Assembly (NCBI GenBank): GCA_020891255.1
Contig: BQFW01000013.1
Location: 1,798,001-1,862,000 of the forward strand
Source of the DNA: Entomortierella parvispora E1425
Taxonomy: Eukaryota; Fungi; Mortierellomycota
Length of the DNA stretch: 64,000 bases
Reading direction: 5' to 3'
A program made the translations under genes and the position numbers. This document shows positions 11,001 through 53,984 of this stretch, piece after piece. Each line of letters begins with the position of its first letter. Position 1 is the stretch's first letter. The notes under the pieces were generated by a model. The model was not told the origin of the DNA. It was given only the letters and a program-made list of their open reading frames with translations, and did no database searches.

Positions 11001-14000
11001 GTCACTAGCCTCTACTCCATTTACACCCGACTCTTGGAGCAACTGGAGGAGCTTGAGGCTGAGAATGAGGGACTCAAGACCGAACTCGAAGAAAAGAAAC
11101 GACGAGGTCTGGTCAGTTTGGGCAGACTGGTCCATGGTGCAATTGGAGGACAATGGTCAGGCTCCAGGAACGGAACAGGTGTTTCATTGGCCAAACGCAA
11201 GGCGGCCTTGATCAAGAGAAACAACGAGGCCTTGATAGCAAGTACTTCATTAGACGAGGAGCAAGTCTCGAAGGATTCAGGCGGTGCACGCTTGGAGGGG
11301 TTACCTCGACCTTCCATGGTTCTAATGTCTCAGGACGCCCTCTCGGGCAACCACCCTTCGGCCGATCAAATCAGGCGCCAACAAGAACAAGATGAAGAAG
11401 AGGAGGAAAGGGCGCGAACTATCCCCAGGCCTCACTCCCCTTCGCTAACCGTCATGTCCTCGGAGAATGAGCCGGCCATGCATACCATCGCGGTCCTCTC
11501 TCAAAAAGTGTCCCTTTTGGAACAAGAGCTGGCTTCAAAGACATGCGACATCAAAGAGCGCGATCTCCTGGTCAGTGAGCTCTCGGATCTGATTGAGGAG
11601 CAGTCTCGCACCTTTGAGGATGAACTCAAGTCACGCGAGGAGAGAATCGACAGTATGGCCAAGGTTCTCGGACGGATCGACAAAGGAGAGTCGGCCCAAA
11701 CTCTGGTGGATGAGCTGGCTGTCAAAATGACGCTCCAGGAGGATAAGCAAAGAATGGATAGGGGGATCGTCTCTGCAAGTCTCTCGGCCTGCGGCGGTGA
11801 TGAGAGAAATGAACCCATCGATTGGACGGTCCTGTTGAAGGCAAGGAGAGGATCCGAGACTGTGAAAGGAAGAGGAGAGCAAGACATTGCAGCGGTTCTG
11901 AAAAGTGAGCTGGAATTGACAAAGGCCCAGACATCTCGATTGGAAATGGCCAATGAAGTCCTGAAAGAGCGGTGGATGCGTGCATTGAGCGACTTGGATG
12001 AGATCCAACAATCCGAGGCCGCCAACCCTGCCCTGGTCAATGGCAGTAATAGCGGTAGTCGACCGGGCAGCACCAATAGTAGCGGTCACATTGATGTTGG
12101 ACCTGGTCTGGATGGCACCGAATCTGTCATCTCCTTCTCTCAGAGCGTGGCGGGACCAAGAGTGACCCGTGTGTTTGTGGCCAAGAAACGACCTCAGAGC
12201 GATCAACAGGACGAACCCTTGATGTTGACCCTCGATGAGGGCGGCCAGCCCCTGCCGGATTCTCCAACACTGGAAGAGATCGAACTTGTCTTTGAGATCT
12301 TGATGGCTAACTTGGCCGAAATTTCAAGGGATTCAGAAGAAGCCGATCTCCGCCTTCAAGAGTGTACGCGCGCCAAGGAACAGATTTACAAGCGTTGCCT
12401 GTACCTTGACGGTCTACAGCGGAAATTGGACGAGAATGTGGAGAAGATTGTTTCGCAACCCTTCAAGGCCGACACTCAGCCACCGAACTTCATGCAGGAG
12501 CAGCTCAAGTTGCAGACACAATTGAATCAGTTGATGAGCCAGGCCGAGTCTGTCACGAAAATGAATCAAAAACTGAAGCAGGATTTGCAAGACTACAAAG
12601 AAGAAAAGCAGACGAGACTGAAGGAGTTGGATCAAGTCCGGGAGTTGATGCGTAAGATCGGACCTCAAGAGCTGCTGAGGGGTCTGCTAGTCAAACTTGA
12701 GATTGCCAATCCAGAAAATGGTGGAGCAATCAACGAGGCCCGGAGGGAGGCTATCGCGACGGCAGTCGCTCAGGGTATGGAACTAGCTGCAGAGTTGGCT
12801 GCAGAGGAAGAAGAGAATGGCGGTGGATCTCTCCTGGGAGGCGATCGGGTTGCTTCTCACCTGTGGCGGAACTCTTGCAGTGTCATTGACGAGGGTGACG
12901 GCCAGGATGCGATCGATTCCAGACTGGAGACAGCATCGATCGACTATTACACCCAGTCTTGCTCTATCAGTGATCACAAATTGTTTATTCAGTCCCTATG
13001 CTCGACCCTCTATGCTCTTCAAATGACAACCTCGCATCAAATTGTGAGTCTCAAGTCGTCCCTGGCCGAGTCTAGGGCATCGCTTGTCTTGGCCGATCAG
13101 GAGCTTTCCAACTTGAACGATCAGATCGCAGGACTCTATGATGAAGTGGGTACTCTCCGAAACCAGCTCCGGGGACTCCAACATGAACTGGACCGACTGA
13201 TTCAACATCGCAAGGCAGAAGTTGAAAAGGTCTGGGAAATTGTGGGCGAAGTCCGCCTAACCAACGGAGTGGCCAGCAGTGGCGGTGGTGGCAGCGATGG
13301 CGGCGCAGGAATGGACCATGACCAGGATGATGGAGGCTCAGTCTCGAGTGGAGATACCAATCGAAAGAGTGCCTCGATCCAGAGTCGTGCTCTAGCCACG
13401 TCTGTGAGACATTCCAACGCATTGGCCGCAGCTGGATCTTTGGCCGGCACTACAGTGGTGGCTGGCGGGAGCTCCACTGACAATGGAGGCCATTCAAGCA
13501 GCGTCGAGGGCGCCAGTGGGGATGCAGGAAGGTTTGCTGCTGCATCCGCTGCTGGAGGTGAAGGCGAAGGTAGAGATCGCGACTCTGCCGTGGCTCGGTC
13601 ACTTTCGATCTCGCGTGCAGAGCGCGCCTCGGTTCTCCGCCGAGTCTCGTCTCCCCCAGTTCTGTCCGAGAATGACGAAGAGACGATGAGCAATGGAGCG
13701 ATATCTCGTGTTAGCCATGAGTATTCTGATCGTGGCTCCACCGCCGGAGCATCTACTTCCGAACTGGATCGACATGCCCTCATCTCGGCCGAGATGGAGA
13801 AACTGAGAGGGGTTCACTTGCATCTTCTCTCGACCATCACCGAGTACAAGAAGCAGATCTCGGTTGTCAAGGATCGAAACTTGAAGCTGGTTGCCACTCT
13901 TTTGGACCGCGAAAGAGTTCGACTTTGGACAGCGGATGGTCAAGACGACTTTATCAACGCCATGATTACCGCCAACTCCTCTGCGAGTTCTTCAAACAGC

Positions 14001-14723
14001 AGTGGTCATGGTTACAACAACAGCAACAACACTGGAAGCTACGGTTACAGCGGCAGTTATAATGGCCATCGTACCGGCGGTAACGTGTCCACGTCCGTCG
14101 GAGCAATCCATCTAGGAGGGGAACCCACGACTATGGGTTCTTCGTCCCCTTCCAACAACTTACTCAACCCAGGCATTGCAGCAGGCACGAAGAAGCATCA
14201 TCATTTGAGTCTGACAGCGGCAGAAGACGGAATCAAGCTGTTGAGATGTCAATTGGAGAGAATCCGTCAGTCCGAGATGACTCGCTTCGCGGAGATGGGT
14301 GTTGGTTTGACCATGAATTACCCGGGACTGTATCCTCCCCCGTTTTCTGCCTCGGGCTCTGAATCGGGGACGCCATCGTCGCCCCTGTCCAGCCTAGGTA
14401 TTAACACGTCTGGAGGACGTGTCTTTGGTAATGGAGCCCTGAGCAGTAGCAAACCTCCTCTTCCAGGATCCCTTGGTTTCAGAAGCGGATTAGGCAAGAA
14501 GGCCACCAGCCCAGTCGTAGCCTCATCCTCCTCCACTGCTGATGGGGCGTCAAGCAATACTGGTGGGGCGTCAAACAGTACCGGTGGGGCGTCAAGCAGT
14601 ACCGGTGCCATTGAAAAACCAAACAACAAAAGCTCTACGAATACAGCTGGGGACTCCCAATTCGAGGCGGCTCTTTACTCGGATCTTGAGAACCGATACA
14701 GCGGCCAAGGAGGGTTCCGATAG
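8055..14723 (+). CDS. Ankyrin-repeat protein with long coiled-coil C-terminal region (~2070 aa, 5 exons)
   Basis: Exons 8055-8329, 8420-8718, 8862-9019, 9149-10430 and 10519-14723 (an alternative in-frame acceptor exists at 10543). Ankyrin motifs: GATPLNLAVLNG, GITPLCLASYLG, GATALMYA, GLTPLHHA, GRTALHHL, GNTPLHFA. E/L/Q-rich heptad segments follow in the 1384-aa ORF. Confidence 0.8.
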
Positions 14724-14823
14724 TTCATCTCACAAAGACTTTTCATCTGCATGTTCATAGCCAAGTATTAAATAATAAACATCTCAATAACGAAGAAAGA
14801 CGTGTGTGAATGGGCAACAATGT

Positions 14824-16751
14824 TTATTCGATATGCTCGAAAGGCTCGACTGACACGTTGAGCGTGTTGAATAGTGAACGTGCCCGATCCTCCAGGTGGT
14901 CGTCGTCCCTGAGAATCGTCACCACAGTTCCCTTCTGACCCATGCGACCAGTTCTTCCGGCCATGTGCAAGTAGCTCGATGGGGCAGATGGCAGACCCAC
15001 AATGTAGACATGCGACAATCCCGGGAGGTCCAATCCGCGTGCATTGGACTCGTGGGCCAGATAGATGCCCTTGAACCTATCCCCAGCTTTAGCGAGTGGC
15101 CGCGACCCCAAGGACCTGTGCTTCTGATCAAAGGCGCCGTCAATCTGCTTCACAGGTAGACCAAACTCAAATTCGAGTCGATTGGCAATCTCGCGCAGAC
15201 TGAACGGGGAGCAAAAAAAGACGCAGGCACTCTCGACTTTGTCCAGCATGCAGGCCATAGCAACACCTTCCAGCATCCGATCATCATCATCTCTGAACTT
15301 CTGGATGGCAGCTTCGCTCTCATCCAGATCCCCTTGTGGCACGCCAGGGATTTTCAGCGCCGAGATTTGCTTCTTTTTCCAATCCAGATCCTTGCCGTCG
15401 TTTTTCCATTCCTGATCCGTAGCCTGCCAATCGCTTTCAGCTCCCGAGCTCCCAGAACCGCGCGCGTTTCTCTCATTCCAGGGCACACTGGGTTCCTTTT
15501 TCATGTTGCGGACCGAATCTGGGCCCACTATCATGCAATGATGGCGAATTCCCTCGGGGAGAACCACGCTTTTAGTCGTGTCCACCCACTCTGCGTTCTG
15601 GATCCAATGATGAGATTCAAGCCAATAACGGATAGGTCGATTCATCGTAGCAGATGCCACCACAAACTGAATTCGATTCAAAGGCGCCGCCGTGCTAACG
15701 CCTTTGCTGTTGTCACTGTCTCCTTCTGGCGACACCTCTGCCTCGGCCAGTTCCTTGTATCGTCCTGCCGCCTTTGCAGAGCGCAAAATCTCACGAACAG
15801 CGAGTTCGGCAGAAGTTGGGTGAACGCTCCTGTTCGTGATCCTTTTCTGGCTGGCAAAGCGAGTCGGCAGCTGAATCAAATTGTCTACTTCATCCAGGAC
15901 CAAGGTCTCGATTCCACTCAGATCCAGGACTCCCTGTTGAATCAATGCCCAGAGTCGATTGGGTGTCGCCACAAGAACATGGGGCAATGCCTCCGAAAGA
16001 CGCTCCACTTGCTTTTCTTCTTCCAGGGCTCTCTTCTTTTGTAATACCCGTGATGAATCCGGGGGTGAGGAGGACGAAGGTGCGGAGGAAGGAACGACCA
16101 AGACCTGGATGAGTCTATTCAGTTGATCGGGATCGTCGGCAAGGGCTGGGAACAGATCCTTGGTCCAGGACACGAGCTGAAATGCCAGTTCCTGATTTGG
16201 TACGACGATTACAGAGGTGATTCCTGGACGACCGGCAGCATCCTTCACACGGGGCTTGTTGAGGAGAGAGAGCAGAACGCCAAATGTCTTTCCTGATCCA
16301 GTGGTATCGCGAATGAGGACGTCTTTGTGCTGAAGAATGGGTGGTATAAATGTTTGCTGAAGTAGTGTGGGTTCCTGGATCGACATTCGGTTCTTTAGAT
16401 TGGCTGCAAGTGGTGGAAAGACACCTATTGACTAGAAGCGATTGGTCAATCGACATGACATTAGAATGGATATTTTGTTCATATTGTTTCAAGTGACGTT
16501 CTCTCTTCCAGGATCATTGGATCTGATCAGAGCAGGATACTCACCTCAAACGATGGTTTTGCAGGCGATGACTTTGAAGATAGGTGCCTTTTATATCCTG
16601 CGAAAGGTCCTTGTAAACATGTGTGGGTAGGCGATCTAGGAAGAGGGACCAGTGAGGATGTGGAGGCACGAGGTAGGAGGAAGGAACGTGTGTGACGAGC
16701 AAGAGCGGCGCGAACACATGGCTGCAGCTGCCTTGCTGCGTGACTATTCAT
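14824..16751 (-). CDS. DEAD-box RNA helicase, probably mitochondrial (~604 aa, 2 exons)
   Basis: Exons 16751-16545 and 16431-14824. The N-terminus is R/S/L/A-rich like a presequence. Q motif (FESIG...PTLLQ) is completed across the intron. Motifs TGSGKT, LVVATP-like (VLVATPNRL), DEVD, SAT, ARGLD and HMAGRTGR. Confidence 0.85.
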
Positions 16752-36826: not shown

Positions 36827-39800
36827 CTACTCTTCCCAAAGGGGGTCCGAGAGTTCTTTTGATTTAGCCTTCAGTGGCAACGAGCTCTCGTCTGTCCCTT
36901 CAGCAGGCGCATGCTGGTCCTCAACCTTGACCCTGTGGCGCCTGGGCCATTCTTTCAGCCAGGACCACAGCCCCTGGACCTTTAATGAGGCGGATCTTGA
37001 CCGCTCACTCCATTTCGAGCTCGTCGTCCCTGAAGAGGTCATGGTCACATTGGATACCGTTGCACGGCGCGTTCTTGACATTATTCGCGAAGAAATGGAT
37101 GAGGCAGCTTTTCGAGGCTGGTCCTCGTCAGCAGAAAACGTCTCTGGTGGTGGGGGTGCTGTTCCTGGAGTACTACTGGAGAACCAGCTCGATATCGTAG
37201 CTCGCCTTTTTTTCTTACCCCTCGACGAGTTGCCAGAGCCTGCTCTGACACTCTCCACGGTATTAACTGTGCTGTAATCCCTGGATGTGCTGACCAAACC
37301 CGTCAACGAAGATGGAGGAGAGGGTCTCAGTGCCTCAATGCCTGAAGTGGAATGTTGTCCCGACGAGGTCGCTTGTGAATGCAAAGATGGTGGCGAAGAG
37401 AGCAATGGTGCCAGATCGTCTAAAAATGCTTGTTCGGGACACTCTGTTTCCGACAAAACTTCCAAAGGCTGAATTTCCACACCCGACTGAGTTTCAACTG
37501 TGCTTAATGCTGATGTCGTTGTCGCTATGGACAGGGAAGAGATATAAACATCCTGGATAGACTCGCTCTCCTCACTCTGCTCACTAACGGACTTGTCGGT
37601 CACAGAGTCTTCGCTATCGTCGAGTTGCTCCTCCAGTTGATTCTCCACTATTGTTGCGAGTGATGGCGACCTGGAATGTCGAAAGGTAATGTACCCAGCT
37701 CTGTCACACAACAGTGCTTGCTTTACAACTGGATGACTGATCCGTTGGTGCTTCCAGTCCGAAACTACAAATAACAACATATTCAGGTTAGCTACAGCTC
37801 AGTGCCATGTCATGTTCTAACCCCCCACTCAAACTCTTGTAAACATGTCCATGCCAAAACAGGTCGTGGAGGGAGGAAACAGTATCTCACCTGGCCGAGA
37901 CATGTCTACGTCAGTCGGAGAGATTGGCAGTCCGGACTCGTCAAAGAAACTGGACTCGTCGTAAAGTGAGTCTATACGGGGTCGAACCATGGGGATAAGC
38001 CAGCGCTCTTCCTCGAGCTTAAAGTCGTTGACCATGTGCGACGCTTTGGATGGCGACAGAGTTAAGGAACCACTAGTCGGCTCCGGGGCCAATAGAGATT
38101 GGCTATCCAAAGAGATAGTTGCGCACTGGTCCACAAACTCCATCATTCGCCGGATGCGCATTAATAAGTCCGTGCTTTGTTGAGCTCCATGTTTTTCGAT
38201 GAATGGGTCCTATAAAGCAATATATTCTTCATGTTGTTAGGATGGCAAAAAGTAGGTTGAAGTTGTCGGTTGATCCGAATGAAATACCTTTAGCAGCTCC
38301 TTCACAGTTGGTCGAGCCTCTGGCTCTGGTGTTAGACATCTCGAGATGAAGCACCACATCTCCTCTGACATCCCCATGCCGACTGGTCCGTAAGCGTCGC
38401 CGCCCAAGATATTGGAGACACCGCCTATCATCCTTTGACCATAGTTGCTCCAGGAAATACCCTGTGACAGACTGTTCATGTCTGAGCTGGCACTCTGGCT
38501 TTGACTGTACAAATTGGTGTTGGTGAACTGAGGCTTGCCTTTGTTGGCGCCAAAGGAGGCCAAAATGGGGGTATCTGGACCTGGGGCACGACCCTGCGAT
38601 AGTTCGATACAAGCCACGCCCAAAGCCCATATATCAGTTTCTGCGCTGGCTTCTGGGACCGCTCTCTCACCGTCATTAATAGATGACATAGATAAGGATC
38701 TTGTCATCGGCGCTGTTCCTTGGGAGATGAATGAGACCTCTCCCGTCGGTGTAACTGGGGATGATGGATTAGAGATAACAGATTCGGGAGCGAGCCAACT
38801 AGCTGGAAACTCGGTCATGGTCATGGAGCGCCGACGTCGCTTCCGTTCTCCGGCCCCCTCTTTGTGATTCATAATCGAGCCGGACCCGCCGAGCTTGACA
38901 TTTCCTTCTGGAGTTAGAAGAATGTTTCTAGTTTGAAGAATAGTGGAAGTGTAAGTAAAAAATGAAGGCTAACCACAAGTCCATGACGTACCATATTTTT
39001 TTTTGTCCTACCCCGCTTTGATATCCCCATGGACATGATCTTTGCTGTGAAGATAGGCGAGACCAAAGAGGATTTGACTCATCATCCAGCCGATTTCGGC
39101 TTCTGTCAGGGGTCCATCGGAAAGCCGTATGAGATCTGCAACAGAGCCAGCACCACAAAACTCAAGTGACAACTTGTTGAAAAAATGGTGTGGAAAGTAA
39201 GTTGCATTTTCCCACGCATATGTATCACCTGACCTGGAGACTATGTGAAAGCCGAGTGCAGATGCTTACCCAGAGCTCAGACTCGGTGCGATGACATCCT
39301 AGACACTTTACAATTTGGTCGAGTCCATTGAGCTTCAAAGACGCGTCTTCCGTTTGTGCCCATCGCCTAACGGTCGTTGTTGTAGGAACATTTTGCGTGA
39401 CCATAGGATTTGTAGCCAAACAATGTCTCTGCGCGTCATCTTGCTCGAACTCAGTCTCAGCCAAAACTCCAGAATGAATAAGAGGGTGTGGGGGTTGCTG
39501 CCGCTCATATATCGCTTCATGGCCAAGACCTGAGTATCCTGTCTTTTGTCCCATTCGATCATCCTCGCAGCAATGATCTACAATCCAGCTGACAAAATAA
39601 TCGACATGGTCATCCAGCGGCTGCCTATCTTTGCCTGAACTATTGACGTCATTGGCAATCCTGCTCCCGAATCCAAGCTGCCCGCCAAAAAATAGTCGAT
39701 TGCTCCCGCCCCCGCTCCCAGGAAGAGTTGAATCAATAACATCGGCCAGGGTGGATAATGGAATCTTTTTTATGACCACGGTCTTGTTTCCATCGAGCTT

Positions 39801-44340: not shown

Positions 44341-45506
44341 ACGTGCCAAAGATAATGATAACTCCATCCCTTCGTTTGGCGGATAACAAACTTGCATTCT
44401 GTGCTGTGCGGACGTACCCTTGATATCAAAATTTGGATTGGCCAGTGGTTTGTTGTTTATGATCAGTCGAACAGAACACCGAAGGGATAAGATGACAATG
44501 GCAATGGAATGGTAATGGCATTGGCAATGGCAGATGTGTGAAAATGGATGAAGAGATGAGGGGGGTCGACTTGAATGGCAGAGGACGAGAAGCAACCCAT
44601 CTCGCAGCTGTGGCTTCGGGAAGGGGACACTCTGCCTTTTCATCTGGGTAGCACAAGATGCTGGAGAAGAAAAGTTTTCGTGGAAGAGTTGTTAGGATGG
44701 CCGTGCCTTGGTGGAGTGCCTTGGTGGAGAGACTTGCAGTAGGGACCCACACTGTTGGCCCTTTGTTGCCACAATGCAATCTACTGTTCGTATCGACTGG
44801 GCACAGGAGAGCGTGCGCGCTTGTCTTTGCCTTTCTTTTCTCATCTGTGGGCAGGACAACAGCCTGTGCATGGTAGATCTTTTTTTTTCTTTCGTTTTCT
44901 ACTCATTCATCCTTTCTTCGACATCCGATCCTTTCTTCGACATCCCCCTTTCTTCTCTCCTTCCTTCCATCCCACTAGATATGTCCTTGAGAACCAATCT
45001 CATCGATCAAAAATTGGTGACCGCATGGACAGCTGGGAGGGTTGTTGTCCATGATCGCATCGCGTCCAAAAAAACGCGTCTTTGACCTTTTCTGCAGTTA
45101 TTTGACGCACGTCCCACAAGAATCCGAAAAAAAAAAAAAAAAAAACTCGATTTGGATTAATTGTTGTTCGCAAGCACAGTTTCGCTGCTTTATGTATTTC
45201 TGGCTGTATTGTCGTGTAACTGAGGGTATCGTTATATTCTTGCGATGGAAACCTTGGTTACGATTGAAACAAATCCTGAGGCTTAAGCCACGGTGGAGGA
45301 AGCTGTGATCAAAGGATTTCGTCTTGGGGAGGTTGCTGACAAGCCGCCTTGAACAGATACAAAATGGAACAACTCAGTGAACTCGGTATATACAACGTAA
45401 CTGACGTTGAAAGATGCCTTCACTACAAAAAAAAAAAAAAAAAAAAAAACAGAAAAAAAAAAGAAAATGGCGAAAACCTACAGTCCAGATACTGATTCGG
45501 CCCAAC

Positions 45507-48500
45507 CTATTTTTTGCTGGAAAATTGATTGACCCGTCAGGAAGAAAGGAATAAGGTCATCGTGTGAGTTACAATCTTGCAATTGTCATGTCTTCGTCGT
45601 TATGAGCAATTAGTAGGCTTGTCTTACTAGCTGATTGAGAAAACCAAATACGCCGGGTAGAAACATAGGTGTCCATTTTAGTTCCAATTTTGTCATGTGG
45701 TCGTCCTCACCAACAATCAGCTGGTTTGCCTTACCAGCTGATTGAGAAAAACAGAAGCGCCAGGGAGAAATACAGGCGGCGTTGTTAGTTACAATCTTGT
45801 AATTGATATGACTTCGTCGTTATGAGCAATTAGCGAGCTTGACGTACCGCCTGATTGAGAATAACAGAAGCGCCAGGGAGAAATACAGGTGGCCGTGTTA
45901 GCTCCAATGTTACAATTGCTATGACTTCGTCGTTATAAGCAATTACGAGTTTGACGTACTCGCTGATTGAGAAAAACAGAAGCACCAGGGAGAAATACAG
46001 GTGGCCAAGTTAGTTCAAACTTGCAATTGCGATGTCTTCGTCGTTATGAGCAATTAGCGAGTTTGACTTACCCGCTGATCGAGAAGAACAGAAACGCCAG
46101 GTAGAAATACAGGTGGCCATGTTAGTTCCAATGTTACAGTTGATATATCTTCGTCGCTATGAGCAATAAGTAGGCAGTAGGCTTGTCTTACTAGCTGATT
46201 GAGAAAAACAAACACGCCGGGTAGAAACATAGGTGGCCATTTTAGTTCCAATCTTGCGATTTTCATGTCTTCGTCGTTATGAGCAATTAGTAGGCTTGTC
46301 TTACTGGCTGATTGAGAAAACCAAACGCGCCGGGTAGAAACATAGGTAGCCATTTTAGTTCCAATTTATCAGCTGTCATGTGGTCGTCCTCACCAACAAT
46401 GAACTGGTTTGCCTTACCAGCTGATTGAGAAAAACAGAAAAGCCAGGGAGAAATACAGGCGGCAGTGTTAGTTACAATTTTGTAATTGTCATGTCTTCGT
46501 CGTTCTGAGCAATTAGTTGGCGTGTCTTACGGGCTAATAAAAAACAGAAGTGCCAAGTAGAAATACAGGTAGCCATGTCAGTTACAATCTTGAAATTGCT
46601 CTGTCTTCGTCGTTATGAAAAATTAGTTGGCGTGTCTTACGGGCTAATGAAGAACAGAAACACCAGGAAGAAATATAGGCGGCCATGTTAGTTCCGATGT
46701 TACAACTGTTACGTCTTCGTCGTTATGAGCGATTAGGGAATTTGACGTACTCGCTGATCGAGAAAAAGAGAAACGCCAGGGAGAAATACAGGTGGCCATG
46801 TTAGTTCAATCTTGCAATTTCTATGTTTTCGTCGTTATGAGCAATTAGCGAGTTTGATGTACCGGCTGATCGAGAAGAACAGAAACGCCAGGGAGAAATT
46901 CAGGTGGCCGTGTTAGCTCAATCTTGCAATTGCTATGTCTTTGTCGTTATGAGCAATTAGTTGGCTTGTCTTACGGGCTAATTAAGAACAGAAACGCCAG
47001 GTAGAAATACAGGTGGCCATGTTAGTTCAATCTTTCAACTGCTATGTCTTCATCGTCATGAGCAATTAGTGGGCATGTCTTACGGGCTAATTAAGAACAG
47101 AAACGCCAGGTAGAAATACAGGTGGCCGTGTTAGTTCCTATCTTGCAATTTTCATGCAGTCGTCCTCACCAACAATGAATTGGTTTGCCTTACGTGCTGA
47201 TCGAGAAAACAGAAGTGCCAGGGAGAAATACAGGTGGCCGTGTTAGTTCCAATTTTACAATTTGCTATGCCTTTGTCGTTATGAGCAATTAACGAGTTTG
47301 ACGTACTTGCTGATTGAGAAAAACAGAAATTCCAGGAAGAAATGCAGGTGGCCATGTTAGTTCCAATGTTACAACTGAAAACTGCTATGTCTTCGTCGTT
47401 ATGAGCAATTAGCGAGTTTGACGTACTCGCTGATCGGGAGAAACAGAAATGCCAGTGAGAAATACAAGTGGCCGTGTTAGTCCAATCTTGCAACTGCTAT
47501 GTCTTCGTCGTTATGAGCAATTAGTGGGCATGTCTTACGGGCTAATAAAAAACAGAAACGCCAGGTAGAAATACAGGTGGCGATGTTAGTTACAATCTTG
47601 AAACTGCTCTGTCTTCGTTCACTATGAGAAATTAGTTGGCGTGTCTTACGGGCTAATTAAGAACAGAAACGCCAGGTAGAAATACAGCTGGCCATGTTAG
47701 TTCAATCTTTCAACTGCTATGTCTTCATCGTCATGAGCAATTAGTGGGCATGTCTTACGGGCTAATAAAAAACAGAAACGCCAGGTAGAAATACAGGTGG
47801 CCATGTTAGTTCAATCTTGCAACTGCTATGTCTTCGTCGTTATGAGCAATTAGTGGGCATGTCTTACGGGCTAATAAAAAACAGAAACGCCAGGTAGAAA
47901 TACAGGTGGCCAAGTTAGTTACAATCTTGAAATTGCTCTTTCTTCGTCATTATGAGAAATTAGTTGGCGTGTCTTACGGTCTGATTAAGAACAGAAACGC
48001 CAGAGAGAAATACGGGTGGCCATGTTAGTTCAATGTTACAATTGCTGTGTCTTCGTCGTTATGAGCAATAAGTGAGTTTGCTTTACGTCCTGATTGAGAA
48101 AAACAGAAACATCAGGGAGAAATACAGGTAGCCATGTTAGTTCAATCTTGCAATTGCTGCCTTGGTCATTATGAGCAGTTAACAATCTTCACGTACTTGC
48201 TGCTCGAGAAAACAGAAACGTCAGGGAGAAATACAGGTGGCCATGTTAGCTCTTAGCTCCAATTTATCAGCTGTCATGTGGTCGTCCTCACCAACAATGA
48301 ACTGATTTGCCTTACCAGCTGGTTGAGAAAAACAGAAGCGCCAGGTAGAAATACAGGTGGCCGTGTTAGTTCCAATGTTACAATTGCTAAGTCTTCGTCG
48401 TTATGAGCAATTGGCGAGTTTGACGTACCGGCTGATCGAGAAGAACAGGAGCGCCAGGGAGAAATACAGGTAGCCTTGTTAGTTCCATTGTTACAATGGC

Positions 48501-51129
48501 TATGTCTTGGTCGTTATGAGCAATTGGCGAGTTTGACGTACTCGCTGATCGAGAAAAACAGAAACGTCAGGGAGAGATGCAGGTGGCCGTGTTAGTTCCA
48601 ATGTTACAATTGCTATGTCTTCGTCGTTATGAGTAATTGGCGAGTTTGACGTACTCGCTGATCGGGAAAAACAGAAATGTCAGGAAGAAATACAGGTGGC
48701 CATGTTAGTTCCAATTTTACAATTGCCATGTTTTCGTCGTTATAAGCAATTAGCGAGTTTGACGTACCCGCTGATCGAGAAGAACGGAAACGCCAGGGAG
48801 AAATTCAGGTGGCCATGTTAGCTCAATCTTGCAATTGTTATGTCTTCGTTGTCATGAGCAACTAGTAGGCTTGGCTTACGGGCTAATTAAGAACAGAAAC
48901 GCCAGGTAGAAATACAGGTGGCCATATTAGTTGAATCTTGTAATTGTTATGTCTTCGTCGTTATGAGCAATTAGTAGGCTTGTCTTACTAGCTGATTCAG
49001 GAAACCAAACACGCCGGGTAGAAACATAGGTGGCCATTTTAGTTTCAATTTTGCAATTTTCATGTAGTCGTCCTCACCAACAATGAATTGGTTTGCCTTA
49101 CGTGCTGATTGAGAATAACAGAAACATCAGGGAGAAATACGAATGGCCATGTTAGTTCAACCTTTCAACTGCTACGTCCTCATCATCATGAGCAACTAGT
49201 AGGCTTGTCTTACGGGCTAATTAAGAACAGAAACGCCGGGTAGAAATACAGGTGGCCATGTTAGTTACAACAACCTTGTAGTTGCTACATATGTCTTCGT
49301 CGTTATGAGCAATTAAAAGGCTTGTCTTACTAGCTGATTGAGGAAACCAAACACGCCGGGTAGAAACATAGGTGGCCATTTTAGTCCCAATTTATCAACT
49401 GTCATGTGGTTGTCCTCACCAACAATGAACTGGTTTGCCTTACCAGCTGGTTGAGAAAAACAGAAGCGCCAGGTAGAAATACAGGTGGCCGTGTTAGTTC
49501 CAATGTTACAATTGCTAAGTCTTCGTCGTTATGAGCAATTGGCGAGTTTGACGTACCGGCTGATCGAGAAGAACAGGAGCGCCAGGGAGAAATACAGGTA
49601 GCCTTGTTAGTTCCATTGTTACAATGGCTATGTCTTGGTCGTTATGAGCAATTGGCGAGTTTGACGTACTCGCTGATCGAGAAAAACAGAAACGTCAGGG
49701 AGAGATGCAGGTGGCCGTGTTAGTTCCAATGTTACAATTGCTATGTCTTCGTCGTTATGAGTAATTGGCGAGTTTGACGTACTCGCTGATCGGGAAAAAC
49801 AGAAATGTCAGGAAGAAATACAGGTGGCCATGTTAGTTCCAATTTTACAATTGCCATGTTTTCGTCGTTATAAGCAATTAGCGAGTTTGACGTACCCGCT
49901 GATCGAGAAGAACGGAAACGCCAGGGAGAAATTCAGGTGGCCATGTTTGCTCAATCTTGCAATTGTTATGTCTTCGTTGTCATGAGCAACTAGTAGGCTT
50001 GGCTTACGGGCTAATTAAGAACAGAAACGCCAGGTAGAAATACAGGTGGCCATATTAGTTGAATCTTGTAATTGTTATGTCTTCGTCGTTATGAGCAATT
50101 AGTAGGCTTGTCTTACTAGCTGATTCAGGAAACCAAACACGCCGGGTAGAAACATAGGTGGCCATTTTAGTTTCAATTTTGCAATTTTCATGTAGTCGTC
50201 CTCACCAACAATGAATTGGTTTGCCTTACGTGCTGATTGAGAATAACAGAAACATCAGGGAGAAATACGAATGGCCATGTTAGTTCAACCTTTCAACTGC
50301 TACGTCCTCATCATCATGAGCAACTAGTAGGCTTGTCTTACGGGCTAATTAAGAACAGAAACGCCGGGTAGAAATACAGGTGGCCATGTTAGTTACAACA
50401 ACCTTGTAGTTGCTACATATGTCTTCGTCGTTATGAGCAATTAAAAGGCTTGTCTTACTAGCTGATTGAGGAAACCAAACACGCCGGGTAGAAACATAGG
50501 TGGCCATTTTAGTCCCAATTTATCAACTGTCATGTGGTTGTCCTCACCAACAATGAACTGGTTTGCCTTACCAGCTGATTGTGAAAAACAGAAGGGCCAG
50601 GGAGAAATACAGGTGGCCGTGTTAGTTCCAATGTTACAATTGCTATGTCTTTGTCGTTATGAGCAATTAGCGATTTTGACGTACTCGCTGATCGAGAAAA
50701 ACAGAAGCACCAGGGAGAAGTACAGGTGACCATGTTAGTTCCAATGTCACAATTGCCATGTTTTCGTCGTTATGAGCAATTAGCGAGTTTGACGTACCCG
50801 CTGATCGAGAAAAACAGAAACGCCAGGGAGAAATTCAGGTGGCCATGTTAGTTACAATCTTTAAATTGCTATGCTTTCGTCGTAGAGAAATTAGTAGGCT
50901 TGTCTTACGGACTGATTAAGAACAGAAACACCAAGGAAAGTGTTAGTTCCAATCTTGCCATGGTTATGTTTTCGTCGATACTGATAATAGGACGGGTTGT
51001 CGTAATCGACAGCCAGTGTTGATCCAGAGGCGCCCGTAGTCTTGCGCTTTTCTTCTGTTCAACTTACACGGGAGCAGCGATAGTGAGACCTAGAAAGGCA
51101 ACAAGGACAAGAAGGAATTCGATTTTCAT
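45507..51129 (-). CDS. Micro-exon gene encoding a 71-aa secreted Pro/Cys/Tyr/Asp-rich peptide: 50 exons, 48 of them 3 nt
   Basis: Exon 1 is 51129-51068 (ATG...GCT CCC GT|GTAAGT). Micro-exons in transcript order (lowest coordinate, minus-strand triplet): 50909 TCC, 50798 CGG, 50685 CGA, 50572 CTG, 50459 CTA, 50342 CCC, 50230 CAC, 50117 CTA, 50008 CCC, 49896 CGG, 49783 CGA, 49670 CGA, 49557 CCG, 49444 CTG, 49331 CTA, 49214 CCC, 49102 CAC, 48989 CTA, 48880 CCC, 48768 CGG, 48655 CGA, 48542 CGA, 48429 CCG, 48316 CTG, 48197 CAA, 48087 GAC, 47978 ACC, 47868 CCC, 47759 CCC, 47650 CCC, 47539 CCC, 47427 CGA, 47307 CAA, 47194 CAC, 47084 CCC, 46975 CCC, 46863 CCG, 46751 CGA, 46641 CCC, 46531 CCC, 46418 CTG, 46305 CCA, 46192 CTA, 46072 CGG, 45960 CGA, 45848 GCG, 45735 CTG, 45628 CTA. 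The last exon is 45516-45507 (TTTCCAG|C AAA AAA TAG). CDS length 62+144+10 = 216 nt. Confidence 0.8.
45517..50965 (-). repeat. Tandem array of ~107-120 bp units, each one intron plus one 3-nt exon
   Basis: Minus-strand consensus: GTA(A/C)G..aaactcgctaattgctcataacgacgaagacatagcaattgtaacattggaaCTAACatggccacctgtatttctccctggcgtttctgtttttctcgatCAG-NNN. There are 48 AG-NNN-GT junctions. Confidence 0.95.
48316..50574 (-). repeat. Higher-order 1128-bp (10-unit) tandem duplication inside the micro-exon array
   Basis: Eleven consecutive micro-exon positions are offset by exactly 1128 bp with identical triplets (e.g. 50572/49444/48316 CTG; 50342/49214 CCC). The unit encodes CYPTYPGDDR. Confidence 0.9.
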
Positions 51130-52248
51130 TGTAAGGCCGATTGGAGTTGTGTGAAGTAGTTGAGCAAGGTCAGGATGAAGAGAAAGGTGTGGATCAAGCG
51201 ACGGTCATTACACAAAGTAAACAGCGGTATTTAAAGGAGTCAGAGCAAAGAAAATATCTAGGCCTTAGTTCAAACTGGCATTGTTTTTTCAGATCATTAA
51301 AGGGGCACCACTCACCTTGCACTTACTTTCTGGATGGAGACACTCAATATCAGATTACAGTCATTCACATTTACTGACATTGCGAATTTCAGATCGCGGC
51401 AGTATGTTTTTTTTTTTTTGTTTGTCAGAAATTGGTTGACGACAACTGGTGGCCGTGGAAAGCAAGAGCACTGCGTTAGATTGCGCACCTGAATCACTGG
51501 AAACAGCTGGCAAGAGTGCGTTTTGTGTTTCTGTGAGTCTTCATTAAGCCTTGCCAAGATTGGGCCGGCATCCGCTCGAACCACGCGTGCCCTGGCAACA
51601 CATCCTTTTTTCAAACAAAAACAAAAAAAAAGAAAGGGCGTTAGTCTGGTCGGGCATCGTTTTCCTTCAGACCCTGCAAGCGAGGGAATGGAGAGTGGTG
51701 CACAGGTCTGTTGTTGACATAAGTAGAAGGTCAAAGAGTGGGCTGAGACGCTCTACATGCCGATTGAGTAGAGTCGGATATACCAAAAAAAGATAGGGCA
51801 GGACACCAACCACAGGAGGGACTCAGGGTAACAGGCATCCTAAGTTTTCATCCGCCACCCATTCCCTCAGCCCTGCTGCAATTTTCTTTGTGCGACCAGC
51901 CCAGGGTCATTATAACAAAATCATGGCAAATTAAGAGGCAACGCAAAAGCAAAGTCAACCTTCTGACATTACCTGTGAATCGACCACTTTTTTTTGTAGA
52001 TCTCGACTACATGTTCAATTGCAGGACCTGCGAAATCTATTTTTGTTCACCAGTCAAGCATCGCAAGGGTTCTCTGCTTGTCAATTCGACACCAGCAGTC
52101 TAGGTACGCTTAATTTGTTCCTACATCCTTTCTGCCTCGTTGAGCCTGCAGTGCCCAAGGCAAAGAGGCCTCTCTGTCTCCCCCCTCCTCCATGGTGCGC
52201 CACCAATCTATGCCAATTTTTTATTTTATTTTTTATTTTTTTCTACTC

Positions 52249-53538
52249 TCACGAAATGGTTCGGGAGGCAGCTTTGCGAAGTCGATTCATGACCGCAAGA
52301 CCTTCATCGTCTTCGCTGATACCCTCCACAAAAATGCAGTCGACTTTCTGGCCATCCAAGTAACGGAGACCCTTGAACAGCTCCCTAGCAACATCTTCTG
52401 GTTTGGATCCCTGCCCCAATGGAAATTCAATCACTTCCCTTGGCTGTGACTCTGGCAATGACGAGGACGACTCGCGGCTAATCAGAGGGGCAGTCAGACT
52501 GAAGGATGTGCGCAGAATACCGAACCGGCGTTTGCCCTCTTTCTTTAGCCTGTCGATTTCCTTCAGGATAACACTGTACTGAGCCGTCGTGGCATCCGAC
52601 GTCTTTGATCCAACATCGGACGAGGCCCCATACTCGACCAAAACGACCTCAGCTTCTGGAGAATAATGGCGATACTTCATTCCAGGTGTAGTAGGTGTCT
52701 GCTCCATGGCCACATCCGTGAAATGCTTCTTGTAGACTTGAACGCCCTCCATTCCTTTCACCATCCGGATCTGTTCGTATGTAACTCCTCCGGGCCTCAA
52801 GATCGCAGGTGGAACGCGGAGACCATCCACGACCGTCGATTCAATTCCAAAGCTGCATTGGCCACCGTCGATTATCATGGGGATCTTGCCTGCAAGATCA
52901 TCCATCACATGTGATGCGAGAGTTGGGGATGGCTTTCCAGATGAGTTGGCGGAAGGTGCAGCAAGCGGCAGTTCACAGGCTGTGATCAGAGCTCTTGTAA
53001 TTGGATGGGAAGGGAAACGGACAGCGACGGTGGGCTGAGCACATGTAATCTCGTTTGGGATCAAAGCAGACCTTGGGAAGAGTAGGGTCAATGCTCCTGG
53101 CCAGTAAGCCTTGATAAGTTCTGTATACACTTCTGGGATAGTATTGTCCTTGAGCATGGATCGAAGCATCTTGAGAGATGAGACGTGAACGATCAACGGG
53201 TTATCTTGGGGTCGGTTCTTTGCTTCAAAGATGCGTTTAGCAGCTACAGAGTCGAGGGCATTCGCCGCAAGTCCATAAACGGTCTCAGTGGGCATACCGA
53301 CGACTTGTCCCGCTCGCAGGAGCTTTGCAGCACTTTCGAGAACTTGGCGAGTGTGTGGATCAGAGATAATAGGTACAGGGTCCTCGAGATCGGAGGTGGA
53401 GGTATAAGTGATCGAGGCAGGGTCGATCTTCTCGAGAAGGGTTGTGAACAAGGGAGCAACTGAGGACGGCTGAGGAAGCGATGCAGAGGAAGAAGCCGCT
53501 GCGCCCGAGTTGGTGGCGGCAGGACTGAGGTAGGTCAT
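52249..53538 (-). CDS. SUA5: Threonylcarbamoyl-AMP synthase Sua5 (t6A tRNA modification, ~429 aa)
   Basis: Intronless. Motifs VGMPTETVYGLAANAL, AKNRPQDNPLIVHV, WPGALTLL, PLAAPSANSSGKPSPT, GIESTVVD, ILRPGG, PGMKYRHYSP, C-terminal AVMNRLRKAA. Confidence 0.95.
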   Translation of the reverse strand: MTYLSPAATNSGAAASSSASLPQPSSVAPLFTTLLEKIDPASITYTSTSDLEDPVPIISDPHTRQVLESAAKLLRAGQVVGMPTETVYGLAANALDSVAAKRIFEAKNRPQDNPLIVHVSSLKMLRSMLKDNTIPEVYTELIKAYWPGALTLLFPRSALIPNEITCAQPTVAVRFPSHPITRALITACELPLAAPSANSSGKPSPTLASHVMDDLAGKIPMIIDGGQCSFGIESTVVDGLRVPPAILRPGGVTYEQIRMVKGMEGVQVYKKHFTDVAMEQTPTTPGMKYRHYSPEAEVVLVEYGASSDVGSKTSDATTAQYSVILKEIDRLKKEGKRRFGILRTSFSLTAPLISRESSSSLPESQPREVIEFPLGQGSKPEDVARELFKGLRYLDGQKVDCIFVEGISEDDEGLAVMNRLRKAASRTIS

Positions 53539-53984
53539 AGTGCGAGATCTGGACAAGAGGTGAAGAGAGAGTAAAGATGGGAATGGCGAGCGAAGGATCC
53601 TTTGAGCAAACATGCACCGCAGCTGGCAGAAGAAGAGGAGGGGATGGTGCGGGCGCAATGATGCGGTGGATTCACTTGGACAGTCGAGTTGGCGATGAGG
53701 TGAATGAGGTGAATGAGGTGAATGAGGTGAATGAGTCAACCGCAGCGAACGCCTCCAAGGGAACAAAGGCAGAAAAAAAAAAAAAAAAAAGAAAAAGACA
53801 ACCAAAAAAGAACAAAGTGCAGCAGTCACACCACGTGACCCCTTCGCCCATGGGCTAGCGCAGCGAGGGGGGAGAGGCCGCGTTGCGCGTCTTTTTCTTT
53901 TCTTTTTTGCCACCATCTTGCGCAGACACCCCCATTCCATTCCATTCATACCACCCTCTCTCTGTTCTGCTTTTCGAATCCGAC
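53539..53984. promoter_or_regulatory. Probable bidirectional promoter region (SUA5 / HECT ligase), includes a (GAGGTGAAT)x4 repeat
   Basis: 446-bp head-to-head gap with a 9-bp tandem repeat at about 53696-53735. Positional inference only. Confidence 0.4.

Follow-up and report, generated by a model that had tools for sequence, protein, structure and literature searches.

A 5.4-kb "satellite" in Entomortierella parvispora is a candidate gene with 48 predicted exons of three nucleotides

The genome of the soil fungus Entomortierella parvispora E1425 (Mortierellomycotina) carries a "satellite" of 5.4 kb at a locus where the public annotation has no gene, and this array is a candidate unannotated gene on the minus strand. 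The splice signals of its repeat units are selectively maintained. Judged from its sequence, the locus is probably a real, spliced, protein-coding gene, in which a signal-peptide exon would be followed by 48 micro-exons of 3 nt and a short terminal exon. Its transcription, the order and completeness of its splicing, and the secretion and biological role of its product are what we infer from this arrangement. All positions are those of the window, i.e., the whole 64-kb stretch of DNA that was analyzed.

Structure of the locus

Tandem Repeats Finder reported one array, at 45563-50922, with a period of 113, 47.7 copies and 77% matches. On the minus strand, a scan with the regular expression YAG-NNN-GTA matched 48/48 units, which are spaced at 107-120 bp. 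The gap between AG and GT is exactly 3 nt in every unit, despite indels elsewhere, and the units show seven donor hexamers and 13 values of the enclosed triplet. The first-pass annotation, made from the letters alone, had described the motif with its exact gap, the unit lengths and the hexamers and triplets in just this way, and the scan reproduced them all. The whole window contains 52 matches to the pattern YAGNNNGTAMR, a sevenfold enrichment over dinucleotide shuffles (7.1 +/- 2.7), and 48 of the 52 lie within the array, all on the minus strand. With all 48 units as blastn queries, no copy was found outside the array in the 64-kb window. Introner-like elements, which would be near-identical introns scattered over unrelated genes, were also considered, and dispersal of this kind was not found within the 64-kb window. 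The parts of the predicted gene and its surroundings are as follows.

51228..51235, minus strand: TATA-like TTTAAATA, a putative core promoter ~100 nt 5' of the ATG, followed by a pyrimidine-rich leader
51068..51129, minus strand: predicted exon 1, with ATG (A at -3), 20 codons plus 2 nt, and the donor GT/GTAAGT
50912..51067, minus strand: intron 1, 156 nt, its 5' half unique and its 3' half homologous to the repeat unit
45628..50911, minus strand: 48 predicted micro-exons of 3 nt and 47 introns of 104-117 nt, the introns all of one sequence family
48271..50577, minus strand: two copies of a 10-unit block, 1128 bp each
49948..49948, minus strand: branch-motif difference between the block copies, CTAAC to CAAAC
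48200..48205, minus strand: tandem acceptor GAG-CAG closing the intron that follows micro-exon 24
45517..45627, minus strand: last intron, 111 nt, its 5' half homologous to the unit and its 3' half unique, with pyrimidine tract and CAG
45507..45516, minus strand: coding part of the predicted terminal exon, C AAA AAA TAG, which finishes a Tyr codon and continues with Lys-Lys-stop
45427..45467, minus strand: long T-rich tract (plus-strand A-run) that follows the stop at ~40 nt and probably belongs to the 3' UTR or the termination region

Exon 1, which ends in phase 2, encodes a hydrophobic N-terminus resembling a signal peptide. Intron 1 has a CTAAC 31 nt before its CAG with no AG between them. 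The micro-exons run from 50911-50909 to 45630-45628, and the last intron leads into CAAAAAATAG (45516-45507). Both ends had been proposed before, namely an upstream signal-peptide exon with the donor GT/GTAAGT (found at 51129-51068) and a final 111-nt intron in front of C AAA AAA TAG. When the pieces were joined by script, a 216-nt reading frame and a 71-residue peptide resulted, the length and the peptide being the same as in the first-pass annotation. Its phrase "one codon per exon" holds insofar as each micro-exon is 3 nt long; because exon 1 ends in phase 2, however, each codon straddles two micro-exons, with two bases from the end of one and a single base from the start of the next.

The first base of the micro-exon is C in 44 of the 48. 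Since third-position C amounts to only 30% in the genes of the window, this near-constant C is not explained by ordinary codon bias. The openness of the frame counts for little, because the joined triplets are C/G-rich and are stop-free also when read as plain codons. The predicted mature peptide has 50 residues and is rich in Pro, Tyr, Asp and Cys. Its cysteines number five, an odd count that speaks against the gene model. A precursor of repeats processed by Kex2, or a fungal RiPP precursor, in which dibasic KR or RR sites would separate repeated core peptides, does not fit this product, in which there is no KR or RR and only a C-terminal KK.

One block of 1128 bp (10 units) is present twice, and thus the decapeptide CYPTYPGDDR is duplicated in the predicted product. 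The two copies differ at 3 positions over ~1180 bp. One of these differences (49948) changes the branch motif of the intron after micro-exon 9; damage to a branch motif in one of only three recent block-copy differences is a point against the gene model.

The genes for Sua5 and a HECT protein neighbor the array, the HECT gene being adjacent. For Sua5, the annotated start is internal to a 566-residue reading frame. Among the reading frames neighboring the array, none has a NACHT or ankyrin domain, and none has a DUF3328, tyrosinase or similar domain. The published annotation of strain E1425 was made by AUGUSTUS with HISAT2 read mappings as hints, and the strain has its own stranded RNA-seq (DRA013164; 2 x 150 bp, RF; PMC8759367). 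In our judgment HISAT2 is unable to place 3-nt exons, so that the absence of a gene model here is expected rather than contrary evidence.

Splice signals and their conservation

Introns of the array start invariably with GTA and have G at +5 in 46/48 units, and their donors fit the U2-type GTRNGN. An ACTAAC-like branch site lies ~44-47 nt before the acceptor, followed by a pyrimidine-rich stretch free of AG and an end in YAG, which is always CAG or TAG in the 48 units. Branch motifs like CTAAC had been claimed for most introns; indeed, CTAAC, CTAAA or CTAAT is found in 35 of the 37 non-redundant units, and the other two have CAAAC in one case and CTGAC in the other. Across the 48 units, AG dinucleotides occur 140 times in the 5' parts and once in the ~36-nt zone before the acceptor. 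Counted as new AGs in this zone, the comparison is 1 observed to 3.1 expected, a test of low power. The single AG is the GAG of the tandem acceptor GAG-CAG (48200..48205), and its use would add one in-frame codon. GT and AG are intact in all 49 introns. Half of the first and half of the last intron are unique sequence, and yet both keep proper splice signals.

Similar signals are seen in genuine introns nearby. Four introns of the HECT gene, a small sample read by eye, have GTAAGN or GTAATG donors, a CTAAY branch and YAG acceptors, and in these types the signals of the repeat units match them. These four introns are 68-105 nt long, and their distance from branch to acceptor is ~17-27 nt as against 44-47 nt in the array. 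The longer distance in the array is an observation against the gene model.

For an estimate of constraint, a tree of the 37 non-redundant units was computed with the signal columns left out. These columns, ten in number (GTA, the G at +5, the CTAA of the branch and AG), show 4 parsimony changes on this tree, whereas ~27.5 are expected (permutation P ~1.5e-5). When the geometry of the signals was shifted circularly through the 113 positions, the next-lowest count was 14 changes. Invariant columns make up 19 of 113 in the 37 units, and those of GTA and AG are all among them. At position -3 of the acceptor only C or T is found (27 C, 10 T; 37 units), with 6 inferred changes. No other two adjacent positions of the unit vary as much as positions 2 and 3 of the triplet, which have 17 changes, whereas the second-ranking pair has 13. 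The pattern of a neutral satellite is not fitted by so few changes in the signal columns next to a variable triplet, and the earlier remark that AG and GT are conserved while the triplet varies is borne out by these counts.

Database and literature searches

A search for RNA runs returned none, either with the exon-1 region or with 10 kb of neighboring genes. In a search of 5.8 billion proteins, nothing matched the predicted peptide. In that collection the strain's own Sua5 protein is a one-member cluster, so the runs of this strain seem to be absent from it and the missing match weighs little. A spurious reading frame through the array was compared with 1.84 billion cluster representatives and gave two weak, unrelated hits, which are 183-bp and 100-bp satellites in metagenome contigs. 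A scan of metagenomes with the conserved core of the intron hit a single contig, which is unrelated and matches by chance. The first-pass annotation had suggested related genomes as places to look for such arrays. In the relatives compared at the Sua5 locus, with Sua5 identities of 82% (L002, L003) and 91% (L007), neither an array nor a homolog of exon 1 is present downstream of Sua5, which suggests that the gene is young. Tandem intron-hosted snoRNAs of the SNORD115/116 type were also considered. No Rfam match was found at E <= 1, and in folding the introns do not surpass their shuffled versions (z +0.6 to +2.2); a structured-RNA reading is thus unlikely. Literature searches on micro-exons in Mortierella or Mucoromycota, and on tandem introns with 3-bp exons, returned nothing relevant beyond citations of work on Tuber.

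Alternative explanations

The array might be an intron-derived satellite, amplified in tandem from one intron and its flanking bases, i.e., a silent or recently dead gene whose splice motifs were inherited from a founder unit. Such a relic would suit the lack of an annotated gene and of a transcript or protein record at the locus, the lineage-specific occurrence of the array, and the loss of one branch motif after the latest duplication. It is nevertheless unlikely, since the units have become ~23% different and the signal columns still show only 4 changes instead of ~27.5, with GT or AG lost in 0/49 introns. Decay or gene conversion alone would not spare exactly the signal columns, and correct signals are present also where the first and last introns consist of unique sequence. 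An ordinary non-coding satellite, with AG-NNN-GT in its consensus by accident, is very unlikely. By rough arithmetic AG-NNN-GT is not rare by chance in a 113-bp consensus, taking either strand, but the units have the full ordered set of GTAAG or GTACG, ACTAAC, AG-free pyrimidine tract and YAG. This set lies on the same strand as the upstream ATG and signal-peptide exon with its matching donor, and besides the selective conservation of its columns, the pattern is enriched and exclusive to that strand.

The locus could also be transcribed into an RNA that is spliced erratically or from which the array is mostly excised in a single block, and no defined 50-residue peptide would arise; the product would then be a signal peptide with three residues or a non-coding RNA. 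Exons of 3 nt are sterically awkward for simultaneous recognition of neighboring sites, and exon 1 has a good donor, just as the last intron has a good acceptor. Yet internal sites that are not used would be under no selection to be kept, and the product with all micro-exons skipped is a 23-residue signal peptide stub. Moreover, as the genes of Tuber show, inclusion of whole runs of 3-bp exons is feasible. Removal as a block or erratic splicing is, on this evidence, quite unlikely.

Proposed expression and growth of the gene

Under the preferred reading, that of a spliced protein-coding gene, transcription would start ~50-100 nt 5' of the start codon at 51129. The 49 introns would be recognized individually by intron definition and then removed, probably in order from the 5' end, so that every splice adds 3 nt to the upstream exon before use of the next donor. 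Stepwise removal of this kind would resemble recursive splicing with a payload of 3 nt per step. The 216-nt frame of the mRNA would be translated into the 71-residue precursor, composed of a signal peptide of ~20 residues and a secreted 50-residue peptide with the duplicated decapeptide.

The gene may have grown by tandem duplication of cassettes, each with a single micro-exon between a 3' half-intron and a 5' half-intron. Homology of the introns would allow unequal crossing-over, by which single residues are inserted, deleted or reshuffled at the DNA level, always in frame. It is a more tentative idea, which we hold to be rather doubtful, that E. parvispora has a family of such "codon-cassette" genes, whose secreted peptides are encoded one residue per intron-flanked 3-nt exon. 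Because exon 1 ends in phase 2 and 44/48 micro-exons start with C, skipping of almost any subset would delete residues without a frameshift or a substitution at the junction. With such clean skipping, one locus could secrete a combinatorial peptide set.

Comparison with known systems

The closest known case is that of the NACHT-ankyrin (nank) genes of Tuber melanosporum, which the first-pass annotation had named. The precedent is real: dozens of 3-bp mini-exons, alternatively spliced so that the product is diversified, are ascribed to these genes by three papers that cite Iotti et al. 2012 (PMC4986451, PMC9815663, PMC13449251). By these accounts, both cases are fungal and have tens of consecutive 3-nt exons, short introns and frame neutrality. 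Exons of exactly 3 nt follow one another in E. parvispora too (48 predicted), in a different kind of gene. Tuber belongs to the Ascomycota and its genes encode intracellular NLRs, whereas the gene of E. parvispora, a member of the Mortierellomycotina, is predicted to encode a small secreted peptide without a NACHT or ankyrin part. Its whole mature product would come from micro-exons; in Tuber, by the same accounts, only one segment of a large protein does.

In schistosomes, micro-exon genes (MEGs) reportedly have exons of 6-36 nt and long, unrelated introns. They share with the predicted E. parvispora gene a signal-peptide exon, a symmetric chain of micro-exons, a terminal exon, a small secreted product and exon skipping that keeps the frame. 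The array differs in that its predicted exons have 3 nt, its introns all belong, as tandem copies, to one 110-nt family and its host is a fungus rather than an animal. This likeness is one of architecture only, with no sequence homology. Introns are also said to be gained by tandem duplication across AG/GT, in single events that leave the protein unchanged. As in those events, the duplicated segment supplies a fresh donor-acceptor pair, and the 1128-bp block added ten introns and ten codons; in E. parvispora, in contrast, the process would have been iterated ~48 times, with one residue added per round. Ratchet points of recursive splicing, in long introns of Drosophila and vertebrates, allow stepwise removal through juxtaposed acceptor and donor sites and leave zero nucleotides. 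The proposed steps in E. parvispora would instead leave 3 nt each, which together form the coding sequence.

Significance

The question can be tested directly with the existing RNA-seq data (DRA013164). If splicing is confirmed, no gene with a longer run of minimal exons would be known to us, and the mature protein would be the first to be built entirely from 3-nt exons. It would mean that intron-defined splicing copes with dozens of adjacent 3-nt exons outside one truffle gene family, and it would give a concrete case of a protein that grows by one residue per tandem intron duplication. Such a gene would also represent a class of secreted-peptide genes that is invisible to standard pipelines, since exons of 3 nt give read aligners no anchor and are disallowed by gene finders. 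Re-examination might then be worthwhile for many "satellites" of fungal genomes.

Architecture of the predicted gene

The analysis covered the entire minus strand of 45300-51400. Tandem Repeats Finder reported a single array with a period of 113 (47.7 copies, 77% matches, 3% indels). By a scripted scan of this strand, YAG-NNN-GTA was found in 48 of 48 units, with a unit-to-unit spacing of 107-120 bp and an AG-to-GT gap of exactly 3 nt throughout. The donor hexamers are GTAAGA, GTACGT, GTAAGG, GTAAGT, GTAAGC, GTAAAG and GTACAT, and the enclosed triplets take 13 different values. The first-pass annotation had claimed 48 such units with this exact gap, the same donors and the same number of triplet values, and the scan bears out all of this. 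The 64-kb window has 52 matches to YAGNNNGTAMR versus 7.1 +/- 2.7 in shuffles, and 48 of the 52 lie inside the array, all on the minus strand.

Features of the predicted gene
51129 (ATG), minus strand: exon 1, 62 nt, encoding a hydrophobic signal-like peptide, with a phase 2 end at GT/GTAAGT
45563-50922: tandem array
48200-48205, minus strand: tandem acceptor GAG-CAG, in which GAG abuts CAG; the only AG in the AG-free zone of any unit
Downstream of the array, minus strand: final intron, 111 nt, ending in CAG and followed by CAAAAAATAG

Joining of the 50 pieces by script gives a 216-nt reading frame and a 71-residue predicted peptide, exactly the frame and peptide first proposed; the signal-peptide exon ending at GT/GTAAGT and the final 111-nt intron before the stop exon were likewise recovered in the sequence. 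About 40 nt past the predicted stop there is a 41-nt homopolymer-like run (45427-45467; A on the plus strand, T on the gene strand). An extra CAG-AAA-GTAAGT at 51322-51332 (minus), ~200 nt upstream of the ATG and outside the array, is within chance expectation; it could mark a 5' UTR feature.

The first base of a micro-exon would take the wobble position of the codon before it, and in 44 of the 48 proposed micro-exons that base is C. Since third-position C is only 30% in the ordinary genes of the window, this is not ordinary codon bias. Whatever its cause, this C lets the joining of any micro-exon to almost any later one delete residues cleanly.

Constraint on splice signals

The 48 cassettes, each a triplet with its downstream intron, were aligned; removal of the last unit, which is atypical, and of the ten units belonging to a recent block duplication left 37. 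Among these 37, 19 of 113 core columns are invariant, with donor GTA and acceptor AG all included. Acceptor position -3 is only C or T (27 C, 10 T), and the branch columns C-T-A-A are conserved in 37, 36, 36 and 37 units, respectively. Parsimony changes were counted per column (mean 2.76) on a tree built from intron columns, with triplet and signal columns excluded. The ten canonical signal columns (donor +1, +2, +3 and +5; branch CTAA; acceptor AG) show 4 changes on this tree against ~27.5 expected, and a fraction of 1.5e-5 of randomly drawn ten-column sets score this low. With the signal geometry slid round the unit, the next-lowest total was 14 changes. No adjacent pair of columns in the unit varies as much as the last two triplet bases, which have 9 and 8 changes (17 together, versus 13 for the next pair). 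Thus, the spot that varies most is enclosed by invariant splice dinucleotides, a pattern predicted by the micro-exon model and not by a neutral satellite.

In the alignment of all 48 cassettes, each triplet type is flanked by intron ends of a characteristic sequence. CCC triplets have ...TTAG before and GTAAGAC after, and CGA and CGG triplets have ...CGATCAG before and GTACGTCAAACTCG after, a linkage that fits growth by cassette duplication with mid-intron breakpoints. The array contains two copies of a 1128-bp ten-unit block; over ~1180 bp they differ at three positions, and the duplication doubles a decapeptide in the predicted product. At one of these positions, 49948 (minus), one copy reads CAAAC in place of the CTAAC branch motif that the other retains. 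This weighs slightly against strict constraint, although filamentous fungi have degenerate branch motifs.

For comparison with genuine introns, four were taken from the adjacent HECT gene by following its frame breaks. They are 68-105 nt long, with donors GTAATG, GTAAGA, GTAAGG and GTAAGC, CTAAY-type branch sites and TAG acceptors (n = 4). The array introns (104-117 nt) share these donor types and carry ACTAAC as branch motif; the clearest difference is their branch-to-acceptor distance, 44-47 nt versus ~17-27 nt in the four HECT introns. This stretch is pyrimidine-rich and holds one AG in 48 units, versus 140 in the 5' parts. Use of the GAG in that single tandem acceptor would give a 6-nt exon, adding one in-frame codon. 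Newly arising AGs before the acceptor number 1 observed versus 3.1 expected, in a selection test with too little power.

Homologues, annotation and neighbourhood

A search of 5.8 billion clustered proteins found no relative of the predicted peptide. In that collection Sua5 of this strain forms a one-member cluster, so the strain's sequencing runs seem to be absent from it and the negative result carries little weight. Neither the array nor an exon-1 homologue lies downstream of Sua5 in relatives whose Sua5 is 82% or 91% identical, and the array locus looks young. Downstream of Sua5, E. parvispora and the 82% relative on metagenome contig L002 show no conservation; on L002, three ~295-residue frames, one with a faint protein-kinase match, follow Sua5 in tandem (12772-16008). 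A kinase-like fragment is also found in the window at 38237-38872. A spurious reading frame through the array (protein search) and the intron core (metagenome scan) returned only unrelated sequences. One unrelated JGI metagenome contig (L004, 1-11437) consists almost wholly of two satellites, of 183 bp (45 copies, 97% matches) and 179/357 bp, which a gene caller read as long proteins; it surfaced only via low-complexity similarity.

The neighbouring reading frame is Sua5/threonylcarbamoyl-AMP synthase, with its closest named relatives in Mortierellaceae; its annotated copy, P0001, is on contig BQFW01000013.1 of assembly GCA_020891255.1. Counted from an upstream ATG, the frame at 52252-53949 (minus) has 566 open codons; the annotation starts at an internal ATG (429 residues). 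The shorter form is probably right, since in the longer one the Pfam domains start only at residue 210 and homologues cover only ~76% of the sequence.

The public record calls no gene between Sua5 and a 90-residue gene beyond the array, leaving the whole 5.6-kb locus unannotated. The E1425 annotation used HISAT2 read mappings as AUGUSTUS hints, and stranded RNA-seq of this strain exists as DRA013164 (genome announcement, PMC8759367). In our judgement HISAT2 is unable to anchor 3-nt exons, so a missing gene model is expected even if the gene is expressed.

Relation to known systems

Dozens of alternatively spliced 3-bp mini-exons are described in NACHT-ankyrin genes of Tuber melanosporum (Iotti et al., 2012, as cited in PMC4986451, PMC9815663 and PMC13449251). 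Runs of codon-sized exons are thus an established, if rare, fungal phenomenon with which the splicing machinery copes. The Entomortierella array differs in belonging to another phylum and in being a small predicted secreted-peptide gene instead of an NLR gene. Its entire predicted mature product would come from micro-exons, and its introns belong to one tandem family of 113 bp. The logic of a signal peptide, micro-exons and a secreted product recurs in schistosome micro-exon genes, but their exons are longer and their introns unrelated. A literature search for such genes in Mortierella or Mucoromycota found nothing.

Alternative readings

A snoRNA-host or structured-RNA array is unlikely, because the region has no Rfam match at E <= 1 and the folding of four representative introns is no better than that of their shuffles. 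The lack of a unit copy elsewhere in the 64-kb window argues, within that scope, against a dispersed introner. A Kex2-repeat or RiPP precursor is unsupported, with no peptide-tailoring enzymes in the neighbouring frames and no KR or RR sites in the predicted product.

The sequence gives strong and internally consistent evidence that these units act as functional introns on either side of 3-nt exons. Very little weight is left for an array that arose by chance. A locus that is dead or non-productively spliced is a lesser possibility, to which we give roughly a quarter of our belief, and on the sequence we think it likely that the array is a real spliced gene. Its architecture would be extreme and invisible to standard annotation, and it is directly testable from existing data.
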